Part shown: one piece after another, positions 11,633-58,802 of the stretch
Numbering within the stretch: position 1 is the first letter of the stretch
How the letters are laid out: each line of letters starts with the position of its first letter
The notes under the pieces: generated by a model
Databases searched by the model: none
Told to the model about the DNA's origin: nothing
Seen by the model: only the letters and a program-made list of their open reading frames with translations
Assembly (NCBI GenBank): GCA_964057225.1
Contig: OZ059898.1
Location: forward strand, 4,030,001-4,094,000
Reading direction: 5' to 3'
DNA length: 64,000 bases
Origin: Auanema rhodensis
Taxonomy: Eukaryota; Animalia; Nematoda
Translations under genes and position numbers: made by a program

Positions 11633-14600
11633 TTAAATTTCAATTTGAACATATTCACGTCTTGTATTACGTATATTATGAGAATCTTTGTATTGCTTAA
11701 CATCTTGGAATATATTATTTAATGGTTGATATAAAGGTGATTCATATGGAAATATTGGTGTCTGAAAACAAATATTTTAATTTTATGTTTAAATATTAAA
11801 ATTACCAGAATAGGAGCTGTATCATAAGGTTGAATGTTTGAAACTCCATTAGTTTTTCCAGGCTCTATAACATCATATACTCTAGCATATGTGAGATCAT
11901 TCAAATTTGAATCAATTGTATCATTCTGACGTGTTCTTAAAACAATTTTTATTTAATCTGGAGTAAAATATATTGTATCTTACGTTATTTTCGAGTTGGA
12001 TATTTGATTACCATGAACACCTAGAGATACAAGATAATCAGTTACAGAACTTTCTAGTGATGCATTGTCCGGATCAATTCCGGAATCAGGTTGAGATCTG
12101 TTAGTTGGGAAGTCGCGATTTGACAATGCTGATCGTAATTCAGAAGATGTCAATAATGAGGATGTCACTGAATTGACTTGAGTAGGTTGAACAACATTGC
12201 GTAATTGCTCTGTTGAATGTGGCATTCGAGAATTTGGTGATAAAGAAGTTAATTTTCCTTTAGTTACAGAATAAATCTAGAAAAAAACGTATTTGGTATA
12301 ATACTAACTTTAATCAAATCAAACCTGTTTCCTTGGATTATCAACTTCTTTTACAACTGGTGGGCGACAACAAAAGCAACATATGACCAAAAGAAGTAAA
12401 GCAATAAAAATGGTAGATGCTCCAAAAATAGCGATTTGTTGAGTATTGAAACTGATTAAATCAGATTTTTCTGATGATAAGCCAATTTCCAAATACACAA
12501 TTGTTTTCGTCGATTGAATAGATGAGCTTGAGGCTGTTACAGCTACCTTTTCCACAGTTAGATTCTTTTTATGATCAATACTGGACCGTAGAGTTAACTA
12601 GAAATAAATTAAGAAATTAACCAGAAAATAATAGTTTTACTTACAATTCCTGTTTTAGAATTAATTTCCAACAAACTATTCTTATCATCAATAGAATAAC
12701 GAATGTGACCATGAGATCCTCCATCTGAATCAACTGCTTGAACTCTTCCAATAGCAGATCCAACTGATGTTCCTAGTGGAACCTTAAATGAAGTAAGATA
12801 ATATCAAAAACATTATTTATATTTTACTTGGAATTTATATTCTTTTTTGGTAAATGTAGGAGCATATTCATCACATGGAAGTATTTTAAATTCAAAAAGA
12901 ACAACGGCAGATCGAGCGTTTCTGTCTGATGCAACTACTGATATTTGATGATTATTGTTTGTTTCAAAATCCAATTGAGAAATTAATTCAATAGCACCAG
13001 TTATAGAGTTAATTGAAAATTTCTGAAAGAATAGCATAATGTAATAATAATTATATTGAAATTTTAACCTGATCAGGATTTTTAATACTATAACGCAATC
13101 CTTGTATTGGAATACCTGCTCTATTCACAGCTCTTGCTGTGAATACAGTAGTATTCCTTACCGTATTTTCAGGTATATGTACGGTATATTTAGATTGTAC
13201 AAAGAATGGAGCTGTAGATGACCATGTTGACATCGCTATTGACATATCCAAATAAACAATAGTAGATCTTTGTGGATGTCCATGATCCACAGCTTCAACA
13301 ATCATCACCCATGATCCATTTGTGTATTTATTCAAAATATCATCATTCCATTCGTTGAATAAGATAGCTCCTGTTTCTGGCTCAAGGCTTACAACATGAT
13401 AATCATTTCCAGTCAGGATTCGATAAGTTACACGACTATTATCCCCTGAATCATCATCTTGAGCATTTAATCTGAAATACAAGGATTGTCACCAATAATG
13501 CAAAATTTAAAACAAACCGATAAACTAAATCTCCATTGACTATTCCGTTTCGAATTAAAACAGATAAACGTTCTGATGAAAACTTTGGCGAGTTGTCATT
13601 TTCATCCGTTACTTGAATACGTACAGATGTAGTTGAATTCTGATAAAACATCGATCCATCAGCTCCTACATCAACCTAATATTCAAAAATATTATAATTA
13701 TTGATTGAATATTATTGGTTTTACCTCAAATTCATATGTTTCTTTACGTTCTCGATCAATAGGTGTTCGAAGCATCAATCGTCCCAAACGATCAATTTCT
13801 ACCGTATTCGATATATCTCCATCAAGTATACGGTAGTGCAGATTTGCGGTAGAAACGGATATGTTTCCAAATACAGCATTTATTGGCATATTTTCAGATA
13901 TAATAAAACTAAAAAAATAAGAAGAAAATTAAATTTTTTTTGTTATCTTACTTGTATTGTTTTTGAGGGAATGAAGGCCTAGCAGATGGTTGTTTGTTAG
14001 TTACTGTGAGTCGAATTGGTACAGATGAAGATAAGTGAGGATTTCCGTGATCAAATGCAGTAACAGTTATAAGATATTGTGATGATAAAGCCATAGATGA
14101 ATGAAGAATAATAGATCCTTAATCAATATAATTAATATAATTAATATAATAAATAGATAATACCATCTGATGTTATACTGAATTGTTCTTCATGACGTTC
14201 TAAGGAATATGATACTTTGCCATTATCACCAGAATCTTTATCTATTGCTTGTACTTTCAAAAGTATATCATCCGGATTTGCATTTGGATGAACTTGAATA
14301 TCATAAAAAGGTTTTGTGAAAATAGGAGAATTATCATTAATATCAATAAGCAATAATTGAATATCTCCAGTTGTTTTATATTTTCCATCAAAAGCCTAAA
14401 ATATAAATAATAATAATACTTTAATATAATTGTTGTAGTCTTACAATAACTTTAAGATTAATTTCGGAATTTTTTTCATAATCTAATTCTGCTATAGTAT
14501 GTATAACACCAGTATATCTTAATAATATAAATTATAATAAAAAATAAAATTATAAGAAATACCTATCAATAGCAATATCATTATTATCTGTTTCAAAGTA

Positions 14601-17600
14601 ATATTCTATTATACTATCTTGATCAACATCATTTGCTGATAAAGTACTAATTAAAGATCCAACAGGAATAGCTATAATACATTTAATTTTAAGTGTTCTA
14701 TTTATTTTAATGAACATACATTCTAATATCTTTCGAGTAGTTATCTTGGGAAAAGCAGGAGGATTATCATTAATATCATTAACTAAAAGTGATAATATAG
14801 TATTTATATTAATTATTAAATAATTTCAATTAAACTAACCTTTAATATCAATTATTGTTGCTATTTCTCCAGGAAATGGTCCAGTTCCAATAACACGAAG
14901 TTGATATTTTGGTCGAATTTCAAAATCTAGTTCCTGAGCTGTTTTCACAAATCCATCTAAAGTAATATGTAAATAAGTTTATAAGTTAAGGAGTTATTAT
15001 TTTGGAAAAAAATTATTCCAAACCTGAATCAATCTCAAATGCTCCATCTATATTTCCTTCCACAATACTATATGTAATACGAGCATCTCGGTTTATAGTT
15101 CCAACTTGTAAAACTTTTTGTCCTCGATCTAATCCTTCATCAACATCTGATATATAGTTTTCTCGTAAGAAAGCAGGCTCAGCCTCGTTTGGTGTGAGTT
15201 TGGAAAAGCTTTTGCGTTCATCTCGAACACGAATGAACCGATCAGATGATAGAGGTCTATTGCCTTGATCTGAGACACGAACGCGAATCATCCATTCATC
15301 TTGAGATCGAACAAGATTTCTAATAATTTACAAAATATTAAACCTAGTTGAATGAATATATTACCGTTTGTAGTAAAGTTTTCCAGAGCTTGGATCAATA
15401 TCCAACATCATTGAAGTATCTTCAAGCAATTCGAAAACTAGCATACTATTTTCATCAAGATCAAGATCAAGCGCTGTTAATCTAAATCATTAAACATAAA
15501 ATATTGTAAATTGAATAGATGTTTTACTGTGTAATCATTGATCCTTCTACGATTGAACTATCCAAAATCAATAGTTGTGATGTTGATGCTGAAAATTGAG
15601 GAGCGCAGTCATTTTCATCAGCTACATTTATTTTAATTGTACACGAATCCTAAAAAATTTTTAAAGTTTTTTTTAATGTGTTGACTGCTATGATATTACA
15701 TTTTTTCCATTTCCTTCTGCAATAATGACAAGAAAATGCTCAGATTTGCTCTCACGGTCAAGTCCTAGACAAGATAAGTGACCAGTAACCGAATTAATAT
15801 CAAAAAGAGAATTTGAAGCTAAAAATAATAATATTAAATTGAAAAAACTGTTAAATAGATAAAATAACTCACTTTGTAACATGAATCTTTCAATATTTTG
15901 TCCAATTACTCTCTTAAATCCAGTAATTGCTTTGTTCTCTGGTATGGTAACTGTACCACATGAAGCTGAACTAATACGTGGTGGTTCAGGTGCAGATGAG
16001 ACAATTATTAATACGGTAGCCCAATCTACATCTTGTGATAAAGATGAAGCCAAAACTAGAAAAAAATAATTTTGTTGAATAATAAAATTAAATTGAAAAT
16101 TACCAGAAAAACGATATTCTCCATTTGCTAATGAACTTTGAAGTTTCATTTCATTTTCGCTAAGTATTATTTGTTTTGGCATTGATATTGGAGATATATT
16201 AGCATTTCCTAAACAAACAAAAAAGAAATTTATAAAAATCATTTTCTTCACACCTTTTCCAGATATTTTGCCTATAACATTACCAACTTCAAAATTATTA
16301 GCAATGGTAAAAACATATTCTGGACGATCAAAAAAATGCCACCGTTTCGAGCTATTCATTAGTCTAAAAAAAATTTTTTTTTTTGAATAAAATAATTATT
16401 TTTTTACTTGATATAAATAGTTTGTTCTGTATGATAAGGAGGTATTGCTGAATCTGATACAGTTACAACTAATGTTTCTTCAGAAGATGGGAATTGTTCC
16501 ATGAATATTTCACCTTTAAATGTATTTTAATATATTTTAATTATAATTATACTAACCTGTTTTAGTATCAATTGAAAAAATATTATCAGGATTAGAAGAT
16601 AATTCATATTTCAATTGACTATTTAATCCATTATCTTTATCTCTTGCTACTATACGATGAATTCTACGAGAACTATCAGGCCATACATATACAATATCAT
16701 CACTATAATATTATTTATTTATTTGTTTGTTTTTTGTTTATATTTACCTCATTATTTCAGGTTTGTTGTTATTAACATCCAAAATATTTATTTTAATTAA
16801 TTGAGTTGATTTTAATTTTCCACATTTCGCTTCTACTACTAGTGAATAATGCTGATTCTGAATATTTTAATTATTTTTAAAATTTTTAAAAATTAAACTC
16901 ACATCAAACCATTCTAATGTTGAAAGTAATGAAATATCTCCAGTATACTGGTCAATAGCAAACATATCTGTTGGATCAATTAATTTATATGTAACTGATA
17001 AGTTGGCTTCAATAGGTATATCAGCAGATGTTGAAGCTATTATTGTATCTGATATATATTTAGTTTTTAATTAATTTTTTGAATTATGTAAAACCTGGCA
17101 ATGTATCTTCAGATAAATCTATTTCAATAATATCTTTTTCAAACTTTGGAATAACTTCTGTATTACCAACAATCTAAATTATGAATTTTAATAAAATATT
17201 TATAATTTTGTAAAAATTACTTGAAATTCAATCAGAATATCATCTACTGATTCTGTTTCAATATTGACTTTTCGAAAATAAATGGCATGAACAGTTTCTC
17301 CAACATGATCTTTTAATCTTCCACTTAAATATACTGTTCCACTAACTTCATCCAATTCAAATAATTGAGTCTATATAAATTATAACTTAAATTAATTATA
17401 ATTATATTACCTTATTTGATAAATTGTAATAAAATTGTCCATTTTCAGTATTATCTCCAATGACCGCAACTTTAGAACCGATTGGTAGAGATTGCGACAA
17501 ACTTACAGTTTCTCGAAGATTCTATGGTAAAGACAATATTACGTATTTTATAATTTTTATATAAAAAAACCTTAGATAATGGTGGAAGAATCTTTAATGT

Positions 17601-20600
17601 TAATAACTTTTGACGTCCTTCTTTGTCTGATAAAACAAGAACGAGATGCCATGGAGGTAATGTTGATGGTAACGAAATAAGTTTCAAGATTCCATTATTT
17701 ATAAGAAAATTATTGGAAACTTCTAAATTATTTAATTAAATAAACATATATAGATATAGATAAATATACCTGAGCTTTGTAATAACCATTTATGAACACC
17801 GGATGCTTTTATTTCTTTTAAATAACACATAGATGTGCAATTTAGAGGTATACGAATTGTTCTTAAATAATTCAAATATTCTAATATAATTTTTTCAAAT
17901 TTAATTAAAACCTTTCGAATGGTTCTGCTAATTGTACAGCAGTTTCTCCTTTTGCTACTTTGATTGGAACATGACATACAGATGATTTTCGAGGATGTCC
18001 ATTATCAGAAGCAATAACTGATATACGAAAATCATTAGGATCTAAATCAGTTAACTTTCTTCGAAGACGTACATCACCTGAATAAAAAAATTATTACACT
18101 TATAATTAATATTTTTATTTATATACCATTGCTATTAATATGAAAAAGTTGATGAGTTTGCTGTGCTCTATAAACAACAGTACTATTTTCACCATAATCT
18201 GGATCAGTAATCACAATAGAACCTAAATTCATTATTCAGATTATATAATTGTAAAAATAGTTGTTTTTTACCAAAAGATGTTGTTGTATCAGCACTAATT
18301 GGAACAACTAAAGTATGTAATGAAGAACACGATGGAGCATTATCATTAACATCTAAAACTCGAATCCTGACTGTTGTCGTACTAGATAGAGATGGCTGAA
18401 AAACGAATATATGATAAACATGTCTTTTTTTTCAAAATATTATATATAAATTATAAAGTAAATAATTACATGTCCACGATCCTCTGCTAAAATTGTTAAG
18501 TTGTATTCGGATTTCTTCTCTCGATCAAGCTCTTTCTTACAATATAAAGAACCAGATTTTTCATCAATACCAAAATTCTAAATATTGAAAAAGTATTAAT
18601 AATAATAAAATAATTATTTAATTTACATCAGATCCATTTGTTATTCGATAATTAATAATTCCATTTTCATCTGAATCAATATCTGTTGCATTAACACGTA
18701 ATATTTCCACCATTGATACAGAATTCTCAACAACCTTCAATGAAATTCAATTAAATTTTCTTAAATTTAATAAAAACAAACCTCAATGTTATATATTTCT
18801 TTTTCAAATATTGGAGCATTATCATTAACATCACTCAAATGTAATAAAACTGTCATATTTGCTGATTTTGCAGGAATTCCAGCATCAAATGCTTTTACAC
18901 GAATTCGATAAAATTTGATTCGTTCATAATCAAGTGTTGCTGTTAATTGTAGTTGTCCAGTAGAAGGATGAATCATAATTGGACAGGTTGGATGTGATGA
19001 TATGATGGAATAAGAAACTTCTCCATTCTAAAAATTTATATTTTTATAATAAAATAATTCTAATATTTCTTACTTTTCTTTTATCTTTATCTGTTGCGTG
19101 TACAATGTAAAATGGTTCATGTATTGGTTGATCTTCTTTAATTGTTACATCTACAGTATCCATTGGAAATACTGGATAATTGTCGTTATGATCATCGATT
19201 TCAATAAGAACTTGTGTATGATTTGTTCCTCCGCCTACTAGATCAGCCTATAATAGATTTCAAAATAGCTTTGTTCAGTTTATCAACATACTTGAACGTT
19301 TAAAAGTACTGTATCTGATATATCAGCATCAAGATAACGAGCTACTGTAATCCGACCGTTCTCAGGATTTATAATGAATTGATTTCCAGTATTTCCAGAG
19401 GATATGCTATATCTTATGCGTCCCTTTCCAATAGCTTGCACTGTTCCAATTGATATTCCGGGTAGAATATCTTCAGAAGTGTGAATAGTATAACGAGATT
19501 GTGTAAAAACCGGAGATGGAGCATCGCGTGCAATAACATTCAAATTGATTGTAGCCTATTTGTATTTTCAATATATTGTAGAAAAACTACAATTAAACTA
19601 ACTGGATTTTCTGATGCTGCTCCATTACCATCTACAGCAATGACAGTTATTTGATATTTTCCTCGACGTAATTGATCAGAAGCATACACTTCTCCTGATT
19701 TTCTATCGATTCTGAATGGCAGATCATCTGTTGCAAGAGAATAAAATACCTAAAGTATAGAATTATTTGAAGAATTATTTTAAAGTTTTTACTTCGCCCA
19801 AAATTCCTTCATCCGCATCAGTAGCAGCAACATTCAATAATGCTTCTGTGGGCACATCTCCTTCACGAATTGATATATTATATTCAGAAGGATTAAATAT
19901 AGGTGAATTATCATTCACATCAATAACCCTTATACTCACAAAACAAATTCCAATTTGTCCGTCTGAAAGCAGAAAACTGATATGATCTCTAGTTTTTATC
20001 ACTACAACTTTTTCTATGAATTATATTAATTATTTACAAAATAATGCAAAAGCACCTAACAACTTGATTTTATATTATTTTATTTGTTAATTAAATCGAA
20101 CGTAGAAAATTATATCAGAATTAATAAAAAAATCTTGTTAATATTAATTAAATTTTCTTGGCGTAAATAAGAGTTTTCACTTTTGGAAAACAACAAAAAA
20201 CAATATCTTTGCTCTAAATAATACTAGTAATATATAAATATTATATAATATTTATATATTATATATTATATATTTCTTTTTTGGTCTTTTATTACTGTAT
20301 TAACTTACTTTGATCAGTCGCTGTTAACACCAGTTGATGAGTGGATGCTGTTTCATAATCCAACATTTTTTCCAAACAAATAGTACCGGAAGTGGAATCC
20401 AAGGAAAATAACTGAAAACATTAATTGTAAAGATATTAACTATGGTTTGCGTAATACATCTGTTGATCTCTTCTGATTATCTTGAAAAGCATAATGAACT
20501 CGAGGAGCATTTCCACACATTGTATTGTTAGCTTTCACCTGAATATTTCTATTTAGATAATATTTGTATTATTTTAATTTATTTAAAAAATTATATTGAT

Positions 20601-20632
20601 GAAATACTTTATTATAAGTTTAACTATTACAG

Positions 20633-20671
<39 letters not shown>

Positions 20672-21367
20672 ATAAGCATTACTTACTACAATTTCTAGTA
20701 TTCTACAAATTGATCTTATGAGTAGAAAATAATTTTTAGAATTAAAGTTTTATCAATATTATAGTCAAAATTATATTAATTGAGTAGGTTAAGCTTTTTG
20801 AGATTAACCTTAGAATTATATTTTATAAATAATTTGTATGAAATCAATCATTTATATTAATATTATTGATTTTGTAGTATTATAAGTAAGTTTTTACTAC
20901 ATATGATAAAATATATCAAATATTTAATATTTATATGTTTAAAATTATAAAAAATTTCAATAATATTTTATTTTTTAAAATTTAACTCTATTTTATTGTT
21001 AAAAACAGTTTTACTTTTTGTTTATTTTAAAAGCTTTCAATCAATTTAAGTATTCCTTTCCTTATGCACGCATATTTTAAAATTATATAATTTATTTAAT
21101 TATTTGTTACTATAGTTATCCGAATAATTAAAAACATTAGCAATAATAGATTAATCGTTGTATGCTAACTCTTATGAATTCGTTGCCAAGTCAACGGATT
21201 GTCTTCAAACATATCATTATTTCTTCCCAAAGTTTATATTATATAGAAACAGATAATATTATTTGAAATTGTTAACGATTATTATTTATAACAAAAATAA
21301 AATAAATATAGAATAATTTTCTTTTTTTTTATTCAAAATTAGATTTTATCATATAGATTACTAACTT

Positions 21368-21400
<33 letters not shown>

Positions 21401-21507
21401 TATATACATATATATTTCTATGATTTTCTTAAAAATACTAAAAACCTAAATACTCCTTTCTCTCTTTCTCTCTTTCTCCCCTTCTATCTCTCTATACTTC
21501 TCTCTAT

Positions 21508-21577
<70 letters not shown>

Positions 21578-24500
21578 CACACATACTCTATTTCTATCCC
21601 ACTTTCTCTATCTCTATCTTAATTTTACTCTCTTTTATCTTATGTATGTATGTACATAGCTTCATTTCAACAAGAACATATGAAATACTCCGCCCATGTA
21701 TTTTAATATTATTCTCGAAAAAGGCTTCGATTACGCCAGATAATATTTGAGTTTGTTTAACTATTTTTTGCTCATCAAAACATATTTTATATATAAAAAG
21801 TATCTTAACAAATTTTGATTTATGTATTAACTTCAAAAACAAATATATATATTTACAGATTTTTCTCACTTCATGTTAAGAAGATTCTTATTAAATAATT
21901 AATTTAACTATAATTAAAATTATATTGATCAGAAATCGACACGAATACAATATTTTCTAATTTTTAATAGAATTATTTTATTTTTATCTATATATGTATA
22001 TGTATATATATACATATAAATATATATATACATATATATATATTCATATATATAACATTGTATAATAACAACTAATTGTGGTTGATTCATGAAGGAATGA
22101 GCCTCAAGGCTTTTCCTTTACTATATGTTAACCTTGTCGGTGAAATGATCTACATATTAGAGCAACGCTTAAAGGTTAGTATGATGAAAATTTTAAATTC
22201 TAAATATATGTATATATATATATATATATTGCTAATTTTTTATTGTTATGCTGATAGAAAAAACCAAAAATCTTTTCATCAAATTTTAATATTATTCTGC
22301 TTCACATAATTTTATCGAATTTTTTCAAGCAAATAAACCTAAAAATAATGGTTCTCATCATCACAGTAATATTATTAATATTTGAGTTTTATAGCAAATG
22401 GATCAAGAAAAAAGCTTAAAAGTTATAAAAGACATAGTAAATGCTGTGTTTTCAAAAGAGCAGCTAGATGATGTATTTCATCCTCGTCCAATTCCAACAC
22501 GATCTATTTTACGTAAAACATTCGATGCTCTTGCTCATACAAGTTGTATGAAGTTAGCAGAATCAAGGTATAATATTAATTATATAAAACATAATTACTG
22601 AATTATTTAATTTTTTATAATCTTACATTGCAGCATGGATAAGCTATTTGATTTAATGACCATGACATCAAAATTTCAAACTCTAGGTATAATCTATCCG
22701 GAACAGGTAAGTCCATTAAGTGTTCAATGAGATTATAAAAATAATTTTCATTTCTGATAATTAAAATAAAGTTAGAAAACTATTACAGATTCTAATGGTA
22801 GCTGTTAATCATTTGAGAGGTATTAAACAGCTTATTGGAATTAAATATGATAGTGGCTGTATAGCAAATGTTCATCTTCGGGCACGTTTTCTGATCAATT
22901 AAATCAAATAATATTAATTTTAATTTTATATGTAGTCCGATCATTTCACCCCCACGTTCCCAGTCCTATACATGCTGGCAATGCTCTAGCTAATTGTTCC
23001 AATGGCAACATTAGCTGGTTTATCGCCAGCATGCATAGTGACGCCATATTACCTATGCAAAACATTCTATCTAAGAATTAATAATATGAAATACATGTTA
23101 ATTCATATAAATTATTATTATATATATATATAATAATTTCAAATAGAAATAAGTTTTAATTTTCTATTATTCCAGCTTCTAGCTTTGTATCGTCCAACTG
23201 CTAGTTGGGAATGGTCTATGATACGTAATGATCTTCTAGCATATTATCAAGTTAATCATTATCAGTTATTAATATAATAATTGAATAATTTATATTTACT
23301 TCAGGATTGTAAAATTAAAATATCACTACTTATGCGTCAAGGAAGGCAATTGGATGATGGAACTTTTAATCTTCATTTCTCTAATGAACCTTTTTGGTTG
23401 AAACCAGGAGATACTATTCCAGGTTCATGCAAAACTTCTAAATTTCTGTAATTTTTTTATAATTTAAGGAGTTATTAACTATTATGATGTAGATGGAAAT
23501 GTTTATAAAAGAGAAGAACCCGAAGATATTAGATGGACAACAAAACCAAGAACCTTTGGTTTTTTAAAATTTCATGTGCTAATAATGATAATCATAACTT
23601 AATATTTTTTTAATATTATATATTTCAGGATAATTTTGATCTTGAACAAGAAGAGAGATCAACACATCTTGGAGAAAATATGTTTTCAGCAGCATCAACT
23701 TTTCCGGTAAATTCACTTTATCATCCTTATATATATATATATATTTATAATTAATTAAAATATGCAAGAATTAAGTAAAAAAATTCTTTTTTTTCTTTCA
23801 AAGTTTGAAAAATGAACGTAGCAAAAATTACAGAGTATATTTCAAATATTGGATTGGTTGCCTATAGCAACGATTTGAGACAAAACTTTAAATTCAAAAA
23901 AAAAAAGTATATGTATGTATTGAATTCATTTAGTGTGTAAATAAATGAATTATATATTACATATATGTATATATGAGTAATAATTAATTCAAACTATTTC
24001 GTTTTTAATGAGAATGCTTATGATTAAAACTTTTTTTTTCTCAGATTTTATAAGATTAATAATTAAATTGTAAATGTTACTAACCTATAGTTATAATAAT
24101 AATAGTTTTTCTCTTAATAAAAATCTATACTTATATCTTTATATCTTTATATATAGATTATAAGTATAAGTTTTCAAATTTTAAAATAAAATGAAAAAGT
24201 TAAACAAAATTTTTTATAGAATTCTAATAGCTCTAATAAGTCAGAGCCTGTTCCACTACAAGGAGATGAAATGAAATTACTTGAAAGTATTTTTGGAGGA
24301 ATGACTAAATCAAAAGGTAATACTGAAATAATTAGAACAAACGAATTATTTTATTTTTTTAGAAAATGATTCAACTTTTGATTTAATTGGATTAAATGTT
24401 TTTGAAAATGAAGAAGAAGAAGACGAATCTGTTCAAACGTATATTTCAGAAATTAATTCTAATATAGGAAATAAAATTAAAAAAATTGATGCAGCTAGGA

Positions 24501-27500
24501 ATAAGAAAAGTTTGGATGCAATTATGAATGAGGTGATTGTATCTAATATTACTCTAAATTATATATTTTTCTTCTTTTATTTGTTATTACGATCCCTCAT
24601 ATACATATATGTTTCACAAAACATATGAATTTTGAAATGAAAAAATACACAAGTAAAATGCCCAATAAGCTTGAATAAGATCCGAAAATAAAATTTGTGG
24701 ACGAAAAACGTTGTCATTGGAAGGGTTATCCTTCATGTTGCTGTCTGCCTTACTGTCTCAAGAGATTTAACAAAAGGCTTTTAACCGCCGGCACCATTCT
24801 AATGAATAAAGAAAGAAAAGAGTTTCTTAGAAGAAAGAAGAATATTTTAATGAAAAAAGAATCATTTGATATATATCTATTCTCTATAGGCAGATGGTTA
24901 ATATGAGATGACAATATGATCATACCATATACAATATTCAATCATATATGTATATAGTATATAGAATCTTTTAGAAAATCTATCTAAATTTATTTAAGAT
25001 ATGATAAAAGAAAACAAAAGAATATATGTATTTTTTAATTATTATATTTGTTTATTATACTTATATGTTTATTCTATTATATTCTATTTTTTTAGCTCAA
25101 TTTTGATGAGCGTCCTGTTACAAGAGCAAGTAGAAAACCTCGTGGGGCAGATATTTTGAATATGATGGACGAAGTTGCAACCAGGTGAAATTTTTTCCTT
25201 TTTAACATATATTATATATTATATAGACCATACACAGCCCAACAGAATAAAACACTGTATGAACAACGTAGTCGTCCATTAACACGGGATGCATCAAGCA
25301 GAGTAACCTCTAGTTTGACACAGTCGAGGCAGCCATCAGCAAAAAGTCGCACTAGTTCTAGCGGTCCAAGTGGTCGAACGGAAACAAGTAATCCCATATC
25401 TCGATCCCCAAGTATGAACTTGAATATGCAACATGTAGCAACACCACAATGGAGCACCATATATGGATGAACATTGCCATAAACAACATATCAACAATCA
25501 CAAAATAGTATAACAGTAAATATATTATTTACTTATATAATTATTGACAACTTTTGTAATTTAATGAATAAATATATGTTTTAAAAATATTTTTTTGAAT
25601 ATTTCTCTCCTCCCTTGACTCAACTAAGGATTTTACAGTAGTTGACTCTTATAACATGCTAATGATGGTGATTGAGCACCAGATGACCTACAGAGATCTC
25701 TTCTACTTATTTTCAAGCTAGGTAAACAAGTTGTCATGACAGCTGTCAACTCATGAAACAAACCCAACATTTTAGTTATTTGGATAGTAATTGATGCCAA
25801 TAAGTACAATAATATTTAATCAATTAAAAATTATAGGTTCGTACCTTTAAAAGACATGATCCTTTCTCGGCATCTTCTTGAACCAAAACTTCATATAATG
25901 ATTTCTCAAACTGTGGTGGTTTACCATTAGAATCAATAAGATCAGCAATAATCTAGAACAATTCCTATTCAATTAATAAAAAAAAATAATGAATACGGTA
26001 ATATCAGAATGTTTAGGAGGTTTTCCATTGTCTTCCGCTCGAACACGAAATTTGATAATTGGTCCAATTGAACAATCCAACTAAACGAGTTATTTTCTTA
26101 ATGTTTCTTGTTCATTAAAACTTTACCTCTTTCTCAATAATCAATCTTCCTGAATCAGGATCAATTTTTATTAAGTCCGTGTCTAAAACACTATATCGAA
26201 TCCGACCATTTGCTCCTTGATCGGGATCAACGGCATCTAGTACATGATCATTATCTCCATTCCTTTTTATAGTTAAATGCATATTAATTTGTGACCATTG
26301 AGGAGCATTATCGTTAACATCACCTAAAAACATTTTATTTTTATTCTAATATTATATTATATCATACCTATAGTTAATAATACAGGATGTTCAAGAATAG
26401 TTGTATCATCGTCTATATTTTTCATTAAAAATTTCAAATGATATTCAGATATTGTTTCTCTATCGAATAATCCACAAATTAACAAAAGATATATTCTAGA
26501 TGAATCACTCTGTTGTATACATAGTGATGGACATCCACTTAATATCACTTTACTATAAATATAATTATATATATATATATATGTGTGTGTATATAACTTC
26601 TGACAAACCTATTTTTTTGATTTTCATGAACCGATATACGGGCTACAATTGAACCTAATGTTACATTTTCCATCAAATGAGCTGTTGCTGTATCTGTTAA
26701 CCATATGATATCAAGAGCAGGAGCATCCATATTTGAACCTGAAGTAAATAATAACAATTATATAATTTATACAAATAATAAATTACCTTGTATATTAACT
26801 GTAACAAATGTTGTAGCTTCTAATGGAGGTTTTCCATGGTCAGTAGCTACAACTACTAGATCATAAACGGATCCGGGAGGCACAGTTGAAAGCGTTGTTA
26901 AGACCCCAGACGGAGAAATTGAAAAAAATGAAGATGAGCTAGATCTTGTCTACAATTAAATTAAATAAAAATTATATTTTTTTAATATTTACCTTCTGTA
27001 AACGATATGTTAATCGTGCGTTTTCATCAATATCAGCATCAGTTGCTTTTACTGTTAATATAGATGAACCAATGGTAGTAGTTGATGGAATTCTTAAATA
27101 TTAAAAATAACAAAATATATATATATATATATATTTTATTTTAAAAAATTTTAATTATTATTTCATAACACTTACAGTACAGAATATCGAGGCTTCTCAA
27201 ATATTGGTACATTATCATTAGCATCAAGAATATTAATATTCAAACGTAATCGACCAATTCTATAAAATTTATATAAAGTTTTAAGAAGAAAGTTTTTAAT
27301 TTATTTTACTTTGGAGGCTTTCCACCGTCTATAGCTTCAATCATCAACTCATATTTATCTCTATATTCACGATCCAGCTGACCATTAATCACTAAATCCG
27401 CATATAATATTCCATTTAAACGTCTAGTTGTGATCTAAAAAATAAATTTCTTTTTTTTTGCATTCAAACAGTTAATTGTTATAAAGAAAAAAGAAATAAA

Positions 27501-29156
27501 AACATTATGTTACCTTGAAAACGTTGTTGACATTTCCTTGAGAAATGCGGTACTTTTGAACATTATAGCTAGGACCATCCCGATCATCAGCTAACGGTAG
27601 TGGGTATTCAGAGCCAATACGCGCAAATTCAGATATTTCAATCTTAAAAGGAAAGTATGTTTGATGTCAAAAGAAGTTATGCCTGAATACCGTTACATGA
27701 TCTTCTGGGAATGTAGGCACATGGTCATTTTCATCTTCCACTTCAATAGATATTGGAATTCCATCACCGCCTTCCACAGGAATTACCAAAATATCAAAAT
27801 TGGTCTTTTTTTCATAATCAAGGTTTTGTAGTGTAACTATCTCTCCAGTACGTTCATCTACTCGTATTATCTATAATTTATTTTATTTTTATAAACAATT
27901 GCTTAGAAATGAATTGAATGAACTTATAAAATAAGGAAATTTGTATGAATTGTATGTATTATGAAGTATGAGGTAAAAAGGTGCCGTAAGTGGATAACAG
28001 ACGGATGTCAATTAGACCAAACATCGCGTGTTTCCTGTCAACCTTTTATTTTGTCTTTCTCTTCTACATCCTATGTCTTTATTCCTTTTTGTATGTTACT
28101 TTCTTTTCACTATATCTCACTAGATCTTTATGGTCAAACGAACAAGGACGACATCATCTGGACAGAACGGAAGACAGACGTTAGAAAAAGCATGACAACA
28201 CTGATCGTCCTGTCTACAAACGGAACATCTGTTGTTTGTGACAGCTTCATCTGACATTTGATGCTTTAGCTTCGTCAGCAGATTCTTCTCTCTGCTGCCT
28301 TAGAATCTTGACAGATCGCTCTCAGATATTACTTACAAATGCAAATCAACAGAGTTCATCAGAGTATGAAAACGATAAGATCTTGTTTGAGTCTAACTTT
28401 TCTATCTAATAGATATATCAAAAATGAGCTCTACAGGCTCTCTATAGTTACTTAGGTTATTCATTTTAATGAAACGGTCGTGTGCCACTAGTAGTATTAA
28501 CTATACTATCTATATGTATGTACATAATAATAATAATATGAGACTATATGATATTCGGCATACCGAACTATCTAATTATTGTGAGGGATTGTGTCTTATA
28601 AGATGCGTGCTAAAGGCTCTATGGTTTAGTGAAGGTCATATCATTCAGACCTCAAAGGAAAAGAAAAGATCAAGACTATAAGAACGAAGAAAAGTAGGTA
28701 TGAGGTAAGTTGTTCTCATCCCTTTTTGGTCTTCTTAGTATGTCCGTCCTGTTATTCCACTTAGAATTCATCCTCTTTTACCCTCTTCATGGCTTCTTTT
28801 TCTTATCCGCATGATTTATTCCAAAATATCAAGGTCTAATACCTTTATAAGTATATTTTGAAATTTTAAAAAATTATAGTTAAGAAAATGAAAAAAAAAA
28901 CTTCAAAAATAAGATCAAAACACGGAATTTGAAACAAAATCAAGTTGAATAGAAATGTATAAAAATAACTCACTTTCTCTACAACATCATCAGAGTAGAC
29001 CACAAAAAATCGTGGATCTGTGGCTATTTTTGGACTTCCTTCAACATATCCAACGATATGACCAATAGGAACACTTTCCGGTACAGAAAAAAGTATTGAG
29101 TTTGTCAATGATATACTAGTAATTAATAATAAATAGATAAGAATAAAAATAGGCAT
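11633..29156 (-). CDS. cdh-1: Dachsous-type giant atypical cadherin, dozens of short exons
   Basis: Signal peptide in exon 29156-28973; many cadherin motifs (DxNDNxP, LDRE/LDYE, AxDxD, DxGxP); TM helix IAIFGASTIFIALLLLVICCFCC; cytoplasmic PDSGID motif like Dachsous/DCHS1; ends YVQIEI then TAA at 11635-11633. Confidence 0.92.
21511..21573. repeat. (TC)n microsatellite of about 31 units, preceded by degenerate CT-rich repeats
   Basis: Uninterrupted TC dinucleotide run. Confidence 0.95.
22097..25470 (+). CDS. OSCP1: OSCP1 (organic solute carrier partner 1, cilia-associated), nested antisense in cadherin intron 20539-25844
   Basis: MSLKAFPLLYVNLVGEMIYILEQRLK, LAHTSCMKLAESSMDKLFDLMTM, THLGENMF and GADILNMMDEV match the OSCP1 family pattern; about 12 exons; TGA at 25468-25470. 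Confidence 0.92.
22966..23038. other. 73-nt imperfect hairpin in an OSCP1 intron; its apex is an X-box-like site (22996-23009)
   Basis: CTATACATGCTGGCAAT..TAGCTAAT.GTTCCA pairs with TGGCAAC.ATTAGCTG..ATCGCCAGCATGCATAG over about 30 bp; centre is GTTCCAATGGCAAC. Confidence 0.6.
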
Positions 29157-29492: not shown

Positions 29493-29971
29493 GGCGCTGG
29501 TATTGTTTCGCCCACCCCCCCCCTAATAATCAGAGAGTTAACATTAGAGCGCGCTTATAACATTTTGGGGACACACCAGCTCTGCATAAACTAGCGGGAG
29601 TGCTCTATCCCAGATCCGGGGGGTCTGGGGGGGTATCCCCCCCAGATAGAGAAAGCTTCAACAAAATTTAGAAGTATTAAACTCGCAGAAATGAGACTGT
29701 ATTTTCGAGTAAATAACGCATGATCTAAGATAACATTTTGGGCACGCACTAGCTTTGCATAAACCAGCGGGAGTGCTCTATCCCAAATCCGGGGGGTCTG
29801 GGGGGGTATCCCCCCCAGATAGAGAGAGCTTCAACAAAATTTAAAAGTATTAAAAGTATCAGAGAGAGCACTCCCACTCGCAGAGATGAGACTCTTTATT
29901 TTCAGGTAAAAAACGCATGCGCTCTAATGTTAACTCTTAGGGGGGGGGGTGGGCGAAACGATACCAGCCCC
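29493..29971. mobile_element. Non-autonomous DNA transposon (MITE), Merlin-like, 479 bp
   Basis: Imperfect TIRs of about 55-60 bp (29493-29552 and 29919-29971) with GG...CC ends; 8-bp direct repeat TAAATTTT on both sides (29485-29492, 29972-29979); two internal direct repeats (29557-29722, 29730-29919); no ORF. Confidence 0.85.
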
Positions 29972-34400: not shown

Positions 34401-35820
34401 AATCTCAAGTAGATGTCCCAATGAGCCGTCAAGAGGGTCCTTCGCGCCCTTCGTAGATAACTAACTGGAAAGTTATAGTAATTTTGTATCTAAGAAAAGC
34501 CATAAAAAGCCTATTTCCTGATGAGACAAGATCTTCTCAACTATTACATCCACTAATACAATTTCTTCTTGTTCCACTTTTCTAAGCCACAAAATAAACT
34601 TGTTGAAACAATTTTTTAAACAGCACATCATATGAATTCTGAATAAGTATTTCCATCCATCAATGTATTTTAAATAATTTGATGATTTAATGCATACCTA
34701 TACGATTTCAAAGACAAAGATTTCTTATAAGATTAGAAACTCAATCAATTGATTCTATTTTCAAATTATACCCAACTTACAATAGGAGTTCGAAATAGTT
34801 TAAAAAAGTTTTTTTTCGTTTTTGGCAGCCGAACGTCTTTGATGATTATCGCCGCATAACGGCTATTATGTGCCGAAACTGCCATTGAATTGGGTCAAAA
34901 GAAAATAGAGAACAAATAAAACATTAAAGACATTATACTTCATGGATTATAAGTTTCAAAAACGTTAAAGAAAATCAGTAAAATATAAAAACAAAACAAA
35001 AAATATATATATATATATATATTCAAGAGTTAATAAGAGTAACAACATATAGAATGATGTGCATACATATATTTTCTGTGTCAAAAATATATATAATTAT
35101 ACTATAAAATACTTAACTAATAAAGAAACATAGTCAAATTATTATATTAGTGAAAGGGGCTAATATGATGAAAGGTATAACACAAAAAAAAGAAAGAGAG
35201 TTAATATAGTAACATGACAGATGGCATTAGTAAGCAACCTGTCTATCACAATAAAGATTAGGTATTCTATTATATAATTGTGAGTACAAACTGCATTTGA
35301 CTAAGAAAAAAATCAAATAATAGATATATACTATGATGAAAGAAATCACTACACCTCTTCTCAATCATCTTCATCACCCTATTACTATCTTCACCCCAAA
35401 GCTTTTTATGCATATTTACCTTGCTCACCACACACCCTATCTTACTCTGTAGAGTTGAATCAACTTTGTGAGCTTATTCATCCATATTCCCTAGTCCTAT
35501 CCCTTACTGTCTCACAATCTCTCACACAGAGAACTGTCTCTCATTTTCCCATAAAACGGAACTACTGGTCTATAGAAGCAGTTGAACCGTGAATTATATG
35601 GGAAATGAATACTTAGTTCTACAACTCCATAATTTTTCTTTTCGTATTCGAACAAACATTTCAAGCAAAACAGTTCAATTCCCTATTTTTAAAATGAAAA
35701 GGATTTTACAATTCTTTTATTGTAAGATTTGAATTATACAAAATGAAAATACATACATATATACACATGCAATATGAATTTGAAGAAATTGACGTTGATT
35801 ATGATATTCTTGACATGTAT

Positions 35821-36349
35821 TTAGGCTCTTGGACGGTTATACTAGAAATAAAAAAAATTTAAAAGACTCTTAAGACACATCTAAACTTACGTCAGTGAAT
35901 TGAACTCGCGAAAACTCATGATTCATCCTACGTTGAACATTTTCAATTTCTTCCATACAAATATTATAATCTTCTGTTTCCATAAGAACTTTCTTCTAAA
36001 AATAATTTATAAATATAGAAGTTTAAATGAAAAATACCTCTTCGTATCCATATTTAATGAGAACTCCTAATTCAGCAACAGTTCTAGATAATTGACATTT
36101 CTCATGTTTCAGTTTAGCTACAGTTTCTGGAGTGGTACCAGCAGCTGCCGAAATTCTATCATTCAACTAAAGAAAAACGATATGTTATATCTATGTATAT
36201 GACAATGAACAACTTACACTCATGATTTTTGAAATTGTGATTTGTTGCTCATATTCAAATCTTTGAATACCAGCTTGAGCACAACGTAAGTAATCAGATT
36301 TCCATTGATTCATCATTGGGCTAGCATGTTGATCAAAGTTGTTGTACAT
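35821..36349 (-). CDS. Uncharacterised 128-aa helical protein, palindrome left copy (family member P1)
   Basis: Mirror image of the 36859-37387 gene; four exons, GT-AG, all phase 0. Confidence 0.85.
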
Positions 36350-36858
36350 GATTAGAGTAATAAGAATAAAACTGTTGTTATAATTGAAATAACTAATGGT
36401 TAATGTTCTTGTATATCTTATATAGTATTATTTTAGTTGTTAATATTTCATATACCCTATAATATAACTCCAGGGTAAGCTTGTCATTCAAATTTCATGA
36501 ACATAGCGGCAAAATCTCAAAAGATCTTCTACTTTTTTTCGTATGCTCATTAACATCTGAACTAATAAATTAAACTATGATCAAGTTATTCAGGCTTTGT
36601 TTGGGACTGATAAATGTTCAAATTTATTTATTATAAAAAAGTTCAGAATTAAGTTTAATGAGCATACGAAAAAAAGTAGAAGATCTTTTGAGATTTTGCC
36701 GCTATGTTCATGAAATTTGAATGACAAGCTTACCCTGGAGTTATATTATAGGGTATATGAAATATTAACAACTAAAATAATACTATATAAGATATACAAG
36801 AACATTAACCATTAGTTATTTCAATTATAACAACAGTTTTATTCTTATTACTCTAATC

Positions 36859-37387
36859 ATGTACAACAACTTTGATCAACATGCTAGCCCAATGATGAAT
36901 CAATGGAAATCTGATTACTTACGTTGTGCTCAAGCTGGTATTCAAAGATTTGAATATGAGCAACAAATCACAATTTCAAAAATCATGAGTGTAAGTTGTT
37001 CATTGTCATATACATAGATATAACATATCGTTTTTCTTTAGTTGAATGATAGAATTTCGGCAGCTGCTGGTACCACTCCAGAAACTGTAGCTAAACTGAA
37101 ACATGAGAAATGTCAATTATCTAGAACTGTTGCTGAATTAGGAGTTCTCATTAAATATGGATACGAAGAGGTATTTTTCATTTAAACTTCTATATTTATA
37201 AATTATTTTTAGAAGAAAGTTCTTATGGAAACAGAAGATTATAATATTTGTATGGAAGAAATTGAAAATGTTCAACGTAGGATGAATCATGAGTTTTCGC
37301 GAGTTCAATTCACTGACGTAAGTTTAGATGTGTCTTAAGAGTCTTTTAAATTTTTTTTATTTCTAGTATAACCGTCCAAGAGCCTAA
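36859..37387 (+). CDS. Uncharacterised 128-aa helical protein, palindrome right copy (family member P2)
   Basis: Exons 36859-36990, 37042-37170, 37213-37317, 37367-37387 with GTAAGT/GTATTT donors. Protein MYNNFDQHASPMMNQWKSDYLRCAQAGIQRFEYEQQITISKIMS|LNDRISAAAGTTPETVAKLKHEKCQLSRTVAELGVLIKYGYEE|KKVLMETEDYNICMEEIENVQRRMNHEFSRVQFTD|YNRPRA. TATATAAG about 70 bp upstream, AATAAA near 37487; two paralogues in the window support the model. Confidence 0.88.
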
Positions 37388-37570
37388 ATACATGTCAAGA
37401 ATATCATAATCAACGTCAATTTCTTCAAATTCATATTGCATGTGTATATATGTATGTATTTTCATTTTGTATAATTCAAATCTTACAATAAAAGAATTGT
37501 AAAGAATATATGTATATGCTTGTTACAAAATATTGAATGGGCGAGTAAGGCAAAGTCGATTGTCAGTAGA

Positions 37571-38321
37571 TTAAGCCAGTTTCACTTTTTCGAGCATACC
37601 AGAGGCCAAAATCATGAATGGTTTCAACGCTCTGTTATAGATCAAGCAAGATCCACGGGTTTGCGGCAAATATCCAAAAACCAAGACGGCTGTACGAAGA
37701 ACAAAGTAAGCAGGGAATTCATGAAGAAGAGAGTCGAACAAGACGAAAACTCCAAACAACATGAAGTAGCTGAGAATACCAGTTTCAGCAGTACTATTGG
37801 TTTTGAACATCTAATAATAATAAAATTTGATCAAATTAAAATAGGTTTTCTTACTTGAACAGTTCTATACATAGGATAAGCAAGAGCCAGTACGTTACTA
37901 ACAAATTGAGCATAGTTACCGGCTAATAAATAAAGAACAAGTACACTCAAAATTCCGTAAACAGCCTTAATTAAGCATTTATAAATAATTTATAAAATTT
38001 CGATCAACTCACATGTTCTCGCTTCACGCCATTAGCTTCAATCTTGGCAATATTGGAATCGATTGCAGCTCCATGTGATTGTGCAATCCATTTCAACATA
38101 TCACTCTAAAAATAACAATTAAAGTAAAGTAAATATATAAATCTATGTTATACATGAGCTTGCTTGAGTCCTGGGACAATATTGCATTCTGAGGATGGTG
38201 TTGAAGGAGCTGAGACAGCAGACGATGTATTAGCAGTATGGAGTTGTTCCTTATTAGAAGAAACAGGAGTCTTAGATGAGCTTTTGGCTGTTGCGGTACT
38301 GACACCCTGAGAGTTAGACAT
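37571..38321 (-). CDS. Divergent REEP/DP1/Yop1 (TB2/DP1/HVA22) ER-shaping protein with an S/T-rich N-terminus
   Basis: Four exons; GVKREH..VYGILSVLVLYLLAG...SNVLALAYPMYRT, LSYFMLFGVFVLFD and LPQTRGSCLIYNRALKPF follow the REEP5/Yop1 pattern. Confidence 0.85.
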
Positions 38322-39362: not shown

Positions 39363-39708
39363 TTATTAATTATAAATAAACTATTAAAAAATCAAAATAA
39401 ATTGTTTAGTCTGACGGTCCTCTGAGATTATTCTTTTCCCTTATAAACTTAAGGATATATATTGTTGTAGTAAAACATGAATAGCCGTGCAAACCGACAA
39501 GACCCCTAGGCATCACATATAAAACAAACAAACAAAAAAAAACAAACAAAACAAAACAAAAAAGCCAATATAGTAAAAAAAACAATGTTTAGAACTACGA
39601 ATGAAATCACTTGAAGCCGCTATTAAACTATAAACGGATCATAGAACCACTAACTATATTAATATTGTATTATATGAACCGTAATTAGAGAATTGATTTC
39701 TTAAATAA

Positions 39709-40419
39709 TTAACCACGTACAGAAAAACGTGCACCCATTGTTTTAACAGCTTTGCTTCGAAGTTCTAATAATAGTTCGGTCCATTCAGAGTTGCTTCGTT
39801 GTCCGTTTCCCTATGAAGAAAAATAAATAAAAATCTTAATTTTAAAAATACATGATGGCTTCTGGCAAAAATAAGATCAGCATCTTCAGCTGGAACTCCG
39901 AATTCATTTAAGGCCAAACGGCGAACTTCAGTCTGGTTAATGTTTCCATCGCTGTCGGCGTCGTATTTCTTAATAAGTTTAACATTTTATTTAAGAATGT
40001 TATCGATTTACGGTTTTAAATTCTTGGATTCGCTGTTTCATAGTATCTCGAAGAAGTTGTCGAACGACAGGACATTCACTACCGTCCAAATCACTATTCT
40101 TGTCTTGATCAGCAGTCAAAAAGATTCTCTCCAGCTCTATAAAAATATTAGCGACTGTTCTTGAAGAACAAAAACCTTTTCTATTCAAATCCAGTACTGC
40201 CAAAACAAATGGACTGAATTCTCTAAAAGAAATTGCGCCGTCTTCATTTTTATCGTTATCTACACAACATATTTGAAGCCACCCTTCCTCTTCTAGAGGC
40301 TCTAAAATGAAATTAAATAATAAATACAACTTAATCAGTTTATGGTTTCACTAACTGAGTCCTAGTGGTATCGCTGATCCCAAGCATACAAAAGTGGCCA
40401 AGCAAATTAAAAGTCGCAT
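39709..40419 (-). CDS. Secreted EF-hand calcium-binding protein
   Basis: Signal peptide MRLLICLATFVCLGSAIP; EF loops DKNEDGAISFRE, DQDKNSDLDGSE, DADSDGNINQTE; four exons; TAA at 39711-39709. Confidence 0.85.
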
Positions 40420-53293: not shown

Positions 53294-55240
53294 TGAAAAC
53301 TATATGTTTAAAATATAATAATCAGAAATAATATTTTTGGGATTTTGTGTCATATACAGCATGCTTTAATTTGATCTATATTATTATTATTATTATCATA
53401 TAATATAATTTAATTTTGATCTTATTTATATATTATTCATGAATATATTAATTTTATTTAAATAATCGATTAATAAAGTGTGGATAATAAACTCATTTTA
53501 TTTATATTTTTATCTTAATTCTCAATATTATAATAGATATTATATTTTCTTCTTTGTTCTAAATAAACTCTTATCTATTTAAATATGTTATAATATGTGT
53601 AAAAATTGAACAAAATAATAATAAAATTTAAATTATGATAAAAAAAATATTTTCATCATACGTTATCTTTTTTGAATATTATATTAAGTTGTATAAGTTA
53701 ATAAGTTGATTTCCATAATTACTCATGTATAGATGCGACTAATTTTGGAAAACATAAGTTCATACTCAATATGCATATTGTATTATGAAAAGCATATGCG
53801 TATGTGAGTATGTATGTTAAACTAAACTATTTAGTATTATTTAGTATATATAAACTTTATTCTTTACTTATATACGTATATGAGAAACGAGCAATAATGT
53901 ACATACACATGTTACGTAACCATAGAAATTCTATATATTCTTCATATCTTGAATTCAATATTATAACGTCATACTTCGGATTTTAGTTCTGTATTATTCA
54001 TTGTGATGTCTAATACATCACAATGTGTATATATATATATTCTCATATTATATATTATATAGTTATAGTTATAAAGTCTTTGCAATCCATAACAATTAAT
54101 AATCATAATATCTATATTATATATTGATTATGTTCTATAGTAATAACTATAAAATAAAAAGTTAGCATTTAAATATAAAATGCTTTATATCGTAAAATCA
54201 TGTGTTCACATAAGATATTTGTTTGCAGAATTTTTCAAATACCTCATATTTCGGTCTTAAATTCTGATCTTTACAGTGAAAATTTCCTGAACGACTCAAA
54301 CAAATACGATAACATTTGAAAACCTGATCGAATCTGATCATACATCTTCACACATGTATGTCTATGTCTTTTCGTGAACCTTTCCAGGAAATAAGATTAG
54401 ATGAATAGATACTGCTCTCATTTACCATCTGAAAATCTTCTTCCTTGTTTCATTCATTATTATATGTTTATCGACTTAGATAAGCATGTAAAATGAAAGT
54501 CAGCTATTTCAAATTGTTTGAATGACATCATTATTCTACCAACACATCAATAATTTTTTCAACTATATTGTGCAATAGAAAGTTCTAAAATCGTTCAATT
54601 TAGTTCTTTTTTCATTTTAAAAAATGTATAGTTTGGTCTTTTTAATGTTCATTTGCTTATAATCATTTTCAATTTATTAATTCTTCGTTATTTTTTTGAG
54701 TTTTTTTAGTTTTTCAAAGAAGATAGTTTTCTCTGTAAAGGTCAGTATTAAAGATTAAAAAATGTATATGTTTCATATAGTATATATGTATATAGTTATA
54801 ATCTTAACTAGCAATGAGAACCACGCTCTATCGTACAAACTTCTTTTCAATAGATCCCTCGTATTTCTACTACTTCACAGTCTCCCCTTATTTCGTTATG
54901 TTTCTCTTTCTCGTTGTCTGACTCTCCGCTCAATTTTTAATACTCTATGCATCTCAATCTCTTTTTATTTTATGTCTCACCATACAAGAGCTAATCTCGG
55001 AGACTCATTGATCCAAAATCTACTTTAATCAGTCTTTAATATTGCATGAATCTGCACTTTTAGTTCTCAAATTGATCTCTCGGTTTATCAATTTTTAAAT
55101 AATTTAGATAACGTTTTTCTTATCAGCATTTTTTGCTGCATTCGTTTCACATTGTCGTATTTGTTACAAAACCAAAGCTATATACTTATTAACACGTTTT
55201 TTCACAAAAAATAATAGATTATGTTAATGTGTAAACTACA

Positions 55241-55313
55241 GCCCGGTTAGCTCAGTCGGTAGAGCACCAGACTCTTAATCTGGCTGTCGCGGGTTCGAGC
55301 CCCGCATCGGGCT
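55241..55313 (+). tRNA. tRNA-Lys (anticodon CTT)
   Basis: Cloverleaf with acceptor stem GCCCGGT/ATCGGGC, anticodon arm CCAGA-CTCTTAA-TCTGG, GTTCGAG T-loop, and a T-run terminator from 55320. Confidence 0.97.
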
Positions 55314-55975
55314 TCAAAATTTTTTTTTCTAATTTCTACAATTCATCGGTCACGTTTGTTATAAGCTAAGGTTTCATCTTGATTATCATTTTAAAATAAT
55401 AGGTACCAGGCTTCCAGAACCCTTATTTTCTACCTCGTGTATCTGTCAATAGAATAGCTTGATTTGGAAATATTGTAGGAATATCTCTTAATTTTCATTA
55501 AGATTAATCTTCTTCATGTAAAAGACGAGAATACTTCTTAATCGCTCAAAAACTGGTTTATCCTTACCGATTCATTCTTTCCTTTTGTTCACCATATTTA
55601 TTTATTTTGTAACTGATTAATAATTATAAAATCAATCACTATTTATTTTTAAATATGAATATTTAATGTTTTTATTTTCCGATTCAACTTACTATTTTTC
55701 ACCAAAAATATTTTTTTTTTTCATAGAAACTTCAATTTTTTTTTCCAATTTAAAGGCTTATTGAAGGGTGCTCATTTAAATAATATTTCTTTCGTATATT
55801 ATAGATTTAAATGAAATTTAATATTTTGTTTTTCTTGGATTATTCATTTTTTGATCGATTAGATGTCTGATTTTATGTTTTTCTCCGTTTCCTTTTTTTA
55901 TAAAAATTAATTCAGAATAAACATATTAAATCGAACTTCTTAAATTTATTAGTTGAGAATACATAGCTCTTGGCT

Positions 55976-58271: not shown

Positions 58272-58802
58272 TCATCCTCTACGTCTTGTGAACTGAAAAG
58301 AAATATTAATAATAATGCAATTTTCTGTGGCATTTTACATCTGAGGATCTGATTTTTAAAACTTCTTGTGCCATTTCATCTATAAGCAAATCCATGCAAA
58401 ATGACCAATGTTCATATTCAGCTATTTCTTCCAACACAACTTTCTAAATGTCAATGTTATTAAGTAGATAATTTCAGATAGATAACTCGAGAAACTTACA
58501 ATTTTAAAAATGTAACGAAGTTGAACCTCTAATTCTGATAATCTTTGTGCACAATTAGCTTTCTCCAGTTTTGCTACAGTTGTAATCTCTCGTTCCGAAA
58601 CGGAAAAATCACGAATTAATATATTTAACTATAAATAGAATCATGTTTGTGTGTTTTTTAAATCACTTACATTTACTATTTCCCATATAACTTGATCTAT
58701 TTGTCTGTTAATGTGTTCTAGTCCAGTATATGCCAAATGTATATAAAATATTTTCCAAGATTCGATTAACTGTTGAAATGAAACATCAACATGCGCAGAC
58801 AT
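58272..58802 (-). CDS. Uncharacterised 128-aa helical protein (family member Q), paralogue of the palindrome genes
   Basis: Exons 58802-58671, 58628-58500, 58443-58339, 58292-58272 (44/43/35/6 codons, phase 0). Protein MSAHVDVSFQQLIESWKIFYIHLAYTGLEHINRQIDQVIWEIVN|LNILIRDFSVSEREITTVAKLEKANCAQRLSELEVQLRYIFKI|KVVLEEIAEYEHWSFCMDLLIDEMAQEVLKIRSSD|FTRRRG. Confidence 0.88.

Follow-up and report, generated by a model that had tools for sequence, protein, structure and literature searches.

A 1.8-kb palindrome carrying two copies of a small gene in Auanema rhodensis, possibly the product of a recent inverted duplication

The 64-kb window analysed here, the whole stretch of Auanema rhodensis DNA under study, contains a single long inverted repeat, a palindrome at 35705-37503 whose two arms each carry a complete predicted gene (Table 1). 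By aligning one arm to the reverse complement of the other, we found 0 differences over the 849 nt, and this identity covers introns and untranslated regions (UTRs) as well as exons. Since the introns and UTRs also match, the exact identity points to copying rather than to selection. A preliminary description of this locus had claimed 849-bp arms that are identical even in introns and UTRs and that are separated by a 101-bp spacer, and both our exact alignment and our spacer coordinates agree with it.

The genes around the palindrome are ordinary, and the sequence on either side of it is unique. On the right, a TB2/DP1 (REEP-like) gene of four exons on the minus strand ends at 37571, 67 nt from the arm, and a secreted EF-hand gene, also of four exons, lies beyond it. 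On the left, a large cadherin-like gene has its end near 29156. The window is free of any N, the palindrome is internal to it, and the unique sequences next to the two arms differ from each other. Outward of both arm edges the next bases are unpaired, so that the identity stops sharply. Gapped alignment of the outer flanks gave no residual symmetry (p 0.44-0.99), and we found neither a target-site duplication nor another direct repeat at the outer ends of the palindrome, where the flanking sequence is ..AAGGAT before the palindrome and, after it, GAATAT... As routes to the orthologous locus, exact look-ups of the last TB2/DP1 exon and of a 136-aa open reading frame, as well as a word search with an EF-hand exon, returned no match. 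The introns of 42-51 nt and the G+C content of about 28% fit a rhabditid nematode.

Table 1. Positions of the palindrome, of the predicted gene copies with their signals and of the two distant paralogues in the 64-kb window
Feature	Position	Strand	Size	Basis or remark
Left arm of inverted repeat	35705-36553		849 nt	100% reverse complement of right arm
Spacer	36554-36654		101 nt, 24% GC	Imperfect single hairpin centred near 36600
8-mer TCTGAACT	36556-36563			2 nt from left arm; half of the only significant spacer inverted repeat
8-mer AGTTCAGA	36640-36647			7 nt from right arm; partner of 36556-36563, 76 nt between
Right arm of inverted repeat	36655-37503		849 nt	100% reverse complement of left arm
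Right gene copy (predicted), ATG to stop	36859-37387	+		Exon translations; paralogue exon sizes and C-terminal motif; exon versus intron GC
Right copy, exon 1	36859-36990	+	44 codons	
Right copy, exon 2	37042-37170	+	43 codons	
Right copy, exon 3	37213-37317	+	35 codons	
Right copy, exon 4	37367-37387	+	6 codons plus stop	
Left gene copy (predicted)	35821-36349	-		Exact mirror; exons 36349-36218, 36166-36038, 35995-35891, 35841-35821
TATA-like site, right copy	36784-36790	+		Motif scan; 75 nt upstream of ATG
TATA-like site, left copy	36418-36424	-		Mirror of right-copy site
AATAAA, right copy	37487-37492	+		Motif scan; 11 nt inside arm edge
AATAAA, left copy	35716-35721	-		Mirror of right-copy AATAAA
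Distant paralogue (predicted)	58272-58802	-	44/43/35/6 codons	4 exons; ends FTRRRG
Distant paralogue (predicted)	60035-60605	-	47/43/35/6 codons	4 exons; ends FSRRRG

The predicted gene has 4 exons and 128 codons, and its introns of 51, 42 and 49 nt all follow the GT..AG rule and lie in phase 0. GC content is 0.12-0.25 in the introns versus 0.31-0.43 in the exons. With tblastn, the left copy matches the right copy at 100%, and the last exon of the left copy is translated as well. The two copies point outward, their ATGs being separated by 509 bp with no locus in between, and each arm encloses the 3 introns together with 204 bp of upstream sequence. Judged from the positions of the predicted signals, the copied unit seems to correspond almost exactly to one transcription unit plus these 204 bp, extending to about the poly(A) site. 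The earlier claim that each arm holds a full gene, transcribed outward and equipped with a TATA box and a poly(A) signal, agrees with what is read from the sequence. Scans of the palindrome with Rfam and for tRNAs gave no match, and a non-coding RNA reading was rejected on these empty scans.

Two distant paralogues of the gene lie further right in the window, and no family member was found in the 64 kb beyond these two and the palindrome copies. The identity of the paralogues to the palindrome gene is only 19-31% per exon. In all three, the last exon codes for six residues that follow the pattern aromatic-x-R-[R/P]-R-[G/A], and the four-exon model is supported because the paralogues have matching exon sizes and the same C-terminal motif.

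Protein searches were run exon by exon with the spliced model not joined. None of nine exon peptides matched Pfam, and for those of the palindrome gene this held with the E-value limit raised to 10. Exon 2 found no match in a word search whose length filter left the full-length protein outside its scope, and in an exhaustive phmmer search it returned only two repeat proteins, both spurious and explained by their composition. With ESM Atlas no score exceeded 0.8, which is noise, and profile searches of the PDB with exons 2 and 3 yielded a designed repeat protein and otherwise weak noise. Judging by the bit scores required, we estimate that orthologues of less than roughly 55% identity escape a query of 43 residues, so that absence at exon level is a weak statement. 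With this limit, the helical-looking protein appears to belong to a small, lineage-restricted and fast-diverging family with no relative detected at exon level.

Then, we analysed the symmetry of the spacer, for which the outcome depends on the measure. Global mirror alignment was no better than for shuffled sequences (z 0-1.5). By banded local mirror alignment and by the longest mirrored word, the spacer stood out at p about 0.03 against both shuffles and GC-matched genomic pieces. Folded as single-stranded DNA, it forms one imperfect hairpin on the palindrome axis at -11.6 kcal/mol (z -3.2). Shuffled spacers fold at -5.8 +/- 1.8 kcal/mol, with 2 out of 200 as good as the real one, and 0.9% of the GC-matched 101-mers from the window fold equally well. 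When the outer 8-bp pair was removed, the inner 76 nt gave p 0.11-0.13, and the innermost 49 nt gave p 0.24. An AT-only stem adds to the symmetry, and stems of this kind are commonplace in the DNA of the window. Together these data indicate that the self-complementarity of the spacer is real (p 0.009-0.03) but stems from a single 8-bp inverted repeat located next to the arms. Of the degenerate symmetric centre proposed in the preliminary description, the quoted 8-mers are where they were placed and the full spacer is significant at p 0.009-0.03, whereas the inner 76 nt are not (p about 0.11). The further proposal that the palindrome once reached further inward and then drifted is weakly supported, as the signal comes down to one 8-bp repeat and the inner symmetry is not above chance.

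Three readings of this centre, namely a drifted centre, a template switch and a TTAA-specific miniature element, would each leave a short inverted repeat next to the arms. Under a drifted centre, symmetry is expected to fade gradually inward, and such fading is not seen above chance here. Moreover, the centre is no proof of an old, drifted palindrome, because the same trace is expected where the template is switched at a short interrupted inverted repeat (PMC10766186). We prefer, with modest confidence, the template switch as the explanation of the centre over both the drifted centre and the TTAA element.

The account that we put forward, and to which we grant a little less than an even chance, is that the palindrome is real and arose recently in evolution, when a template switch duplicated one complete small gene head to head in inverted orientation. 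The ancestor would have been a single gene, with the short interrupted repeat lying immediately upstream of it. While the DNA was being replicated or a break repaired, a 3' end would have switched template at the 8-bp pair formed by TCTGAACT and AGTTCAGA, 76 nt apart, and the switched end would have run back through the gene, leaving a copy in opposite orientation. By a second join, the copied strand would then have been brought back to the neighbouring DNA. The spacer would be the old loop between the short repeats, and the arms would be identical because they were copied from one another only shortly ago. The outcome would be two outward-reading copies with a common 509-bp promoter region and, if both are expressed, a doubled dose of a lineage-restricted protein.

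The 8-bp repeat with its 76-nt gap fits the geometry described for template-switch sites at palindromic junctions, namely inverted repeats of about 5 nt that lie 40-80 nt apart and are kept at the centre of the junction (PMC10766186). Junctions formed by origin-dependent inverted-repeat amplification (ODIRA) or fold-back priming resemble the locus in having a short inverted repeat centred between long perfect arms (PMC10766186). However, the ODIRA model yields an inverted triplication with flush repeats, whereas we found two copies and 8-mers that lie 2 and 7 nt off the arms. The copy number counts against ODIRA proper. The unmatched nucleotides count against a template switch as well, since flush repeats are expected and a later small indel is needed.

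Another possibility is that the genome is truly single-copy and that the second arm was produced by assembly, polishing or library preparation. An artefactual copy would likewise be perfectly identical. Assembly polishing is also able to erase small differences between near-identical repeats, and the figure of 100% may be slightly flattering if a few true differences were removed in this way. Yet a simple fold-back read or contig artefact is disfavoured because the palindrome is embedded between unique flanks: it lies well inside 64 kb of sequence that has no N, with distinct flanks and a real neighbouring gene at only 67 nt. Its centre is a 101-nt unique spacer instead of an abrupt turn-around, and a chimeric fold-back read would, we infer, continue until the read stops and lose out to the other reads in the consensus. 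That the limits of the palindrome enclose what is predicted to be a complete gene also favours a real structure. We thus regard the palindrome as probably real and an artefact as improbable. Still less probable, in our estimation, is a mobile element, either with the whole unit as a foldback-type element or with the spacer as a TTAA-specific miniature element of about 95 nt (36554-36648) inserted into a near-spacerless palindrome. The miniature-element version draws on the TTAA at 36550-36553 and at 36649-36652, which flank 36554-36648, on the near-terminal position of the 8-mers (2 and 1 nt from the ends of the element) and on the fact that the arms are 2 nt apart once the element is removed. 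However, symmetry itself dictates the TTAA at the start of the right arm, and the second TTAA was spotted only after the fact. In addition, the outer edges lack a target-site duplication, no other copy of the spacer or the arms is present within the 64-kb window, and there is no transposase.

The most serious competitor is an older palindrome in which intrachromosomal gene conversion from arm to arm homogenises the arms while the centre, beyond its reach, has drifted, a reading that we hold to be possible but on balance doubtful. It would account for the 100% identity of neutral-looking introns and UTRs, and the hairpin on the palindrome axis beats 99% of matched controls. In Caenorhabditis, inverted paralogues that lie next to each other have been shown to undergo conversion, as with the hsp16 modules and the hsp70 pair (PMC3966223), and for C. 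elegans it has been suggested that close inverted duplicates are preferentially homogenised (PMC3194840). On the other hand, apart from one 8-bp repeat the symmetry of the centre is not above chance, with a non-significant global mirror alignment, and no decayed symmetry is present in the outer flanks. Identity alone does not tell conversion from recency, and 0 differences over 849 nt are equally compatible with frequent conversion in an old palindrome. Ongoing arm-to-arm conversion therefore stays plausible. The stronger proposition, that a long-lived micro-palindrome has been held identical by frequent conversion in this three-sexed nematode, seems to us rather unlikely. The X chromosome of this species is reported not to recombine in hermaphrodites. 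Whichever event came last, its age can be bounded. Mutation accumulation in C. elegans proceeds at about 2-3 x 10^-9 per site per generation, and by this rate the last copying event would have occurred less than roughly 10^5-10^6 generations ago (about 7 x 10^5 at 95%). Both the duplication and a conversion after it would qualify as that event, and the sequence cannot tell them apart.

Returning to a young inverted duplication made by a template switch, we compared the locus with the class of young adjacent inverted duplicates of C. elegans (Katju and Lynch 2003, as summarised in PMC2728529 and PMC3194840). In both cases, two inverted copies lie side by side without a locus in between, span kilobases and contain a whole small gene. 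Divergence is also about zero in both, non-coding sequence included, and the copy is DNA-mediated with introns and flanks kept. The palindrome differs in its genus, in copy limits that come close to those of a transcription unit and in the short inverted repeat at its centre. As it agrees on each feature tested, the palindrome fits within this class. In C. elegans, newborn duplicates are often adjacent and inverted (PMC2728529). Inverted pairs make up more than 80% of the closest duplicates with dS<0.03 but drop sharply at higher dS, for which preferential homogenisation has been named as one cause (PMC3194840). Inverted gene duplication of this sort is already well described in rhabditid nematodes, and the present example is real-looking and ordinary.

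Two further systems had been suggested as precedents. The hsp-16 locus of C. elegans is a perfect inverted repeat with whole genes around a few hundred unique bases, attributed to recent copying or conversion (Russnak and Candido 1985, as described in PMC3966223). Its arms are 1.9 kb long and each bears a divergent pair of small heat-shock genes, compared with 0.85 kb and one gene here. As a precedent, hsp-16 holds for the layout but not for the genes and the promoter: no exon gave a Pfam match to the small heat-shock (alpha-crystallin) domain at E up to 10, at exon-level sensitivity, and each arm has no three-unit heat-shock element and only one isolated TTCnnGAA. With neither the domain nor the element found, a heat-shock reading was rejected. 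Palindromes of the human and ape Y chromosomes, like the present one, have gene-bearing arms that are more than 99.9% identical around a unique spacer, and conversion between their arms was demonstrated by cross-species comparison (Rozen et al. 2003, as cited in PMC3966223 and PMC3194840). Their arms measure from 9 kb to 1.45 Mb against 0.85 kb here, and the likeness is in form only.

A single locus by itself matters little. If it is a young duplication, the palindrome adds one more clean example of gene copying in nematodes, inverted, about one gene long and turned around at a short inverted repeat. If instead the long-lived conversion reading were true, it would be a small-scale counterpart of mammalian sex-chromosome palindromes. 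In either case, it could help to decide whether the "newborn" inverted duplicates of rhabditids are truly young or are old pairs made young-looking by conversion. With its 1.8 kb, the palindrome fits inside single long reads and offers a compact test case.

Both arms of the palindrome, an exact inverted repeat with 849-nt arms and a 101-nt spacer, carry TTAA at their inner ends, as symmetry forces. A further TTAA lies in the spacer, 2 nt short of the right arm, and together with the one at the inner end of the left arm it therefore delimits a 95-nt piece flanked by TTAA direct repeats. Within this piece the 8-bp inverted repeats (36556-36563 and 36640-36647) are near-terminal. On these sequence features, the layout of the TTAA-flanked piece is MITE-like; no second copy of it was found in the window.

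At the other end, the outer arm edges (35705 and 37503) fall 11 nt beyond AATAAA, that is, approximately where poly(A) cleavage is predicted, so that the duplicated unit corresponds to one transcription unit, that of the palindrome gene (four exons, 128 codons, one copy per arm reading outward), plus 204 bp upstream. The right copy is convergent with a TB2/DP1 gene, and the 67 nt separating the stop of the latter from the right arm lack AATAAA. A candidate poly(A) signal for the TB2/DP1 gene is an AATGAA within the right arm (~37465-37460). Supposing that the right arm were absent, the alternative candidate would be an AATAAA on the minus strand of the spacer, ~95 nt past the stop. These candidate signals give a hint that, of the two arms, the right one may be derived.

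Features located in the window
Feature	Position	Strand	Basis
TTAA	36550-36553, 36649-36652, 36655-36658		
TB2/DP1 (REEP-like) gene, four exons, ~203 codons	37571-38321	-	
Paralogue of palindrome gene	58272-58802	-	Exon sizes and last-exon motif
Paralogue of palindrome gene	60035-60605	-	Exon sizes and last-exon motif
125-nt direct repeat	29557-29681 and 29730-29854		
Secreted-looking EF-hand protein gene, four exons, ~190 codons	~39700-40419	-	
Large cadherin-like gene	~13000-29156	-	Motifs in ORF pieces
tRNA-Lys (CTT) gene	55240-55315	+	Rfam / ARAGORN

Two tandem paralogues of the palindrome gene are strongly diverged from it (19-31% identity per exon) and have identical exon sizes. A last exon of six residues, aromatic-x-R-[R/P]-R-[G/A], is conserved in the family, and an exon-level Pfam search returned no match. 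As judged from sequence, these genes form a small orphan family. Between the paralogues, exon-like pieces (59110-59625, minus strand) lie where the preliminary description placed a 'family member R' with a dynein-intermediate-chain-like tail; they were not matched by the family's exon profiles.

In the EF-hand gene, exon 1 is signal-peptide-like and exon 2 has two EF-hand loops; a word search limited to the 60-190 aa range found no close relatives. The cadherin-like gene shows DxNDNxP-type motifs and a signal-peptide-like first exon (28866-29156), immediately upstream of which lies the 125-nt direct repeat (copies 94% identical, spacing 173 nt). The tRNA-Lys is the sole Rfam or ARAGORN match in the window.
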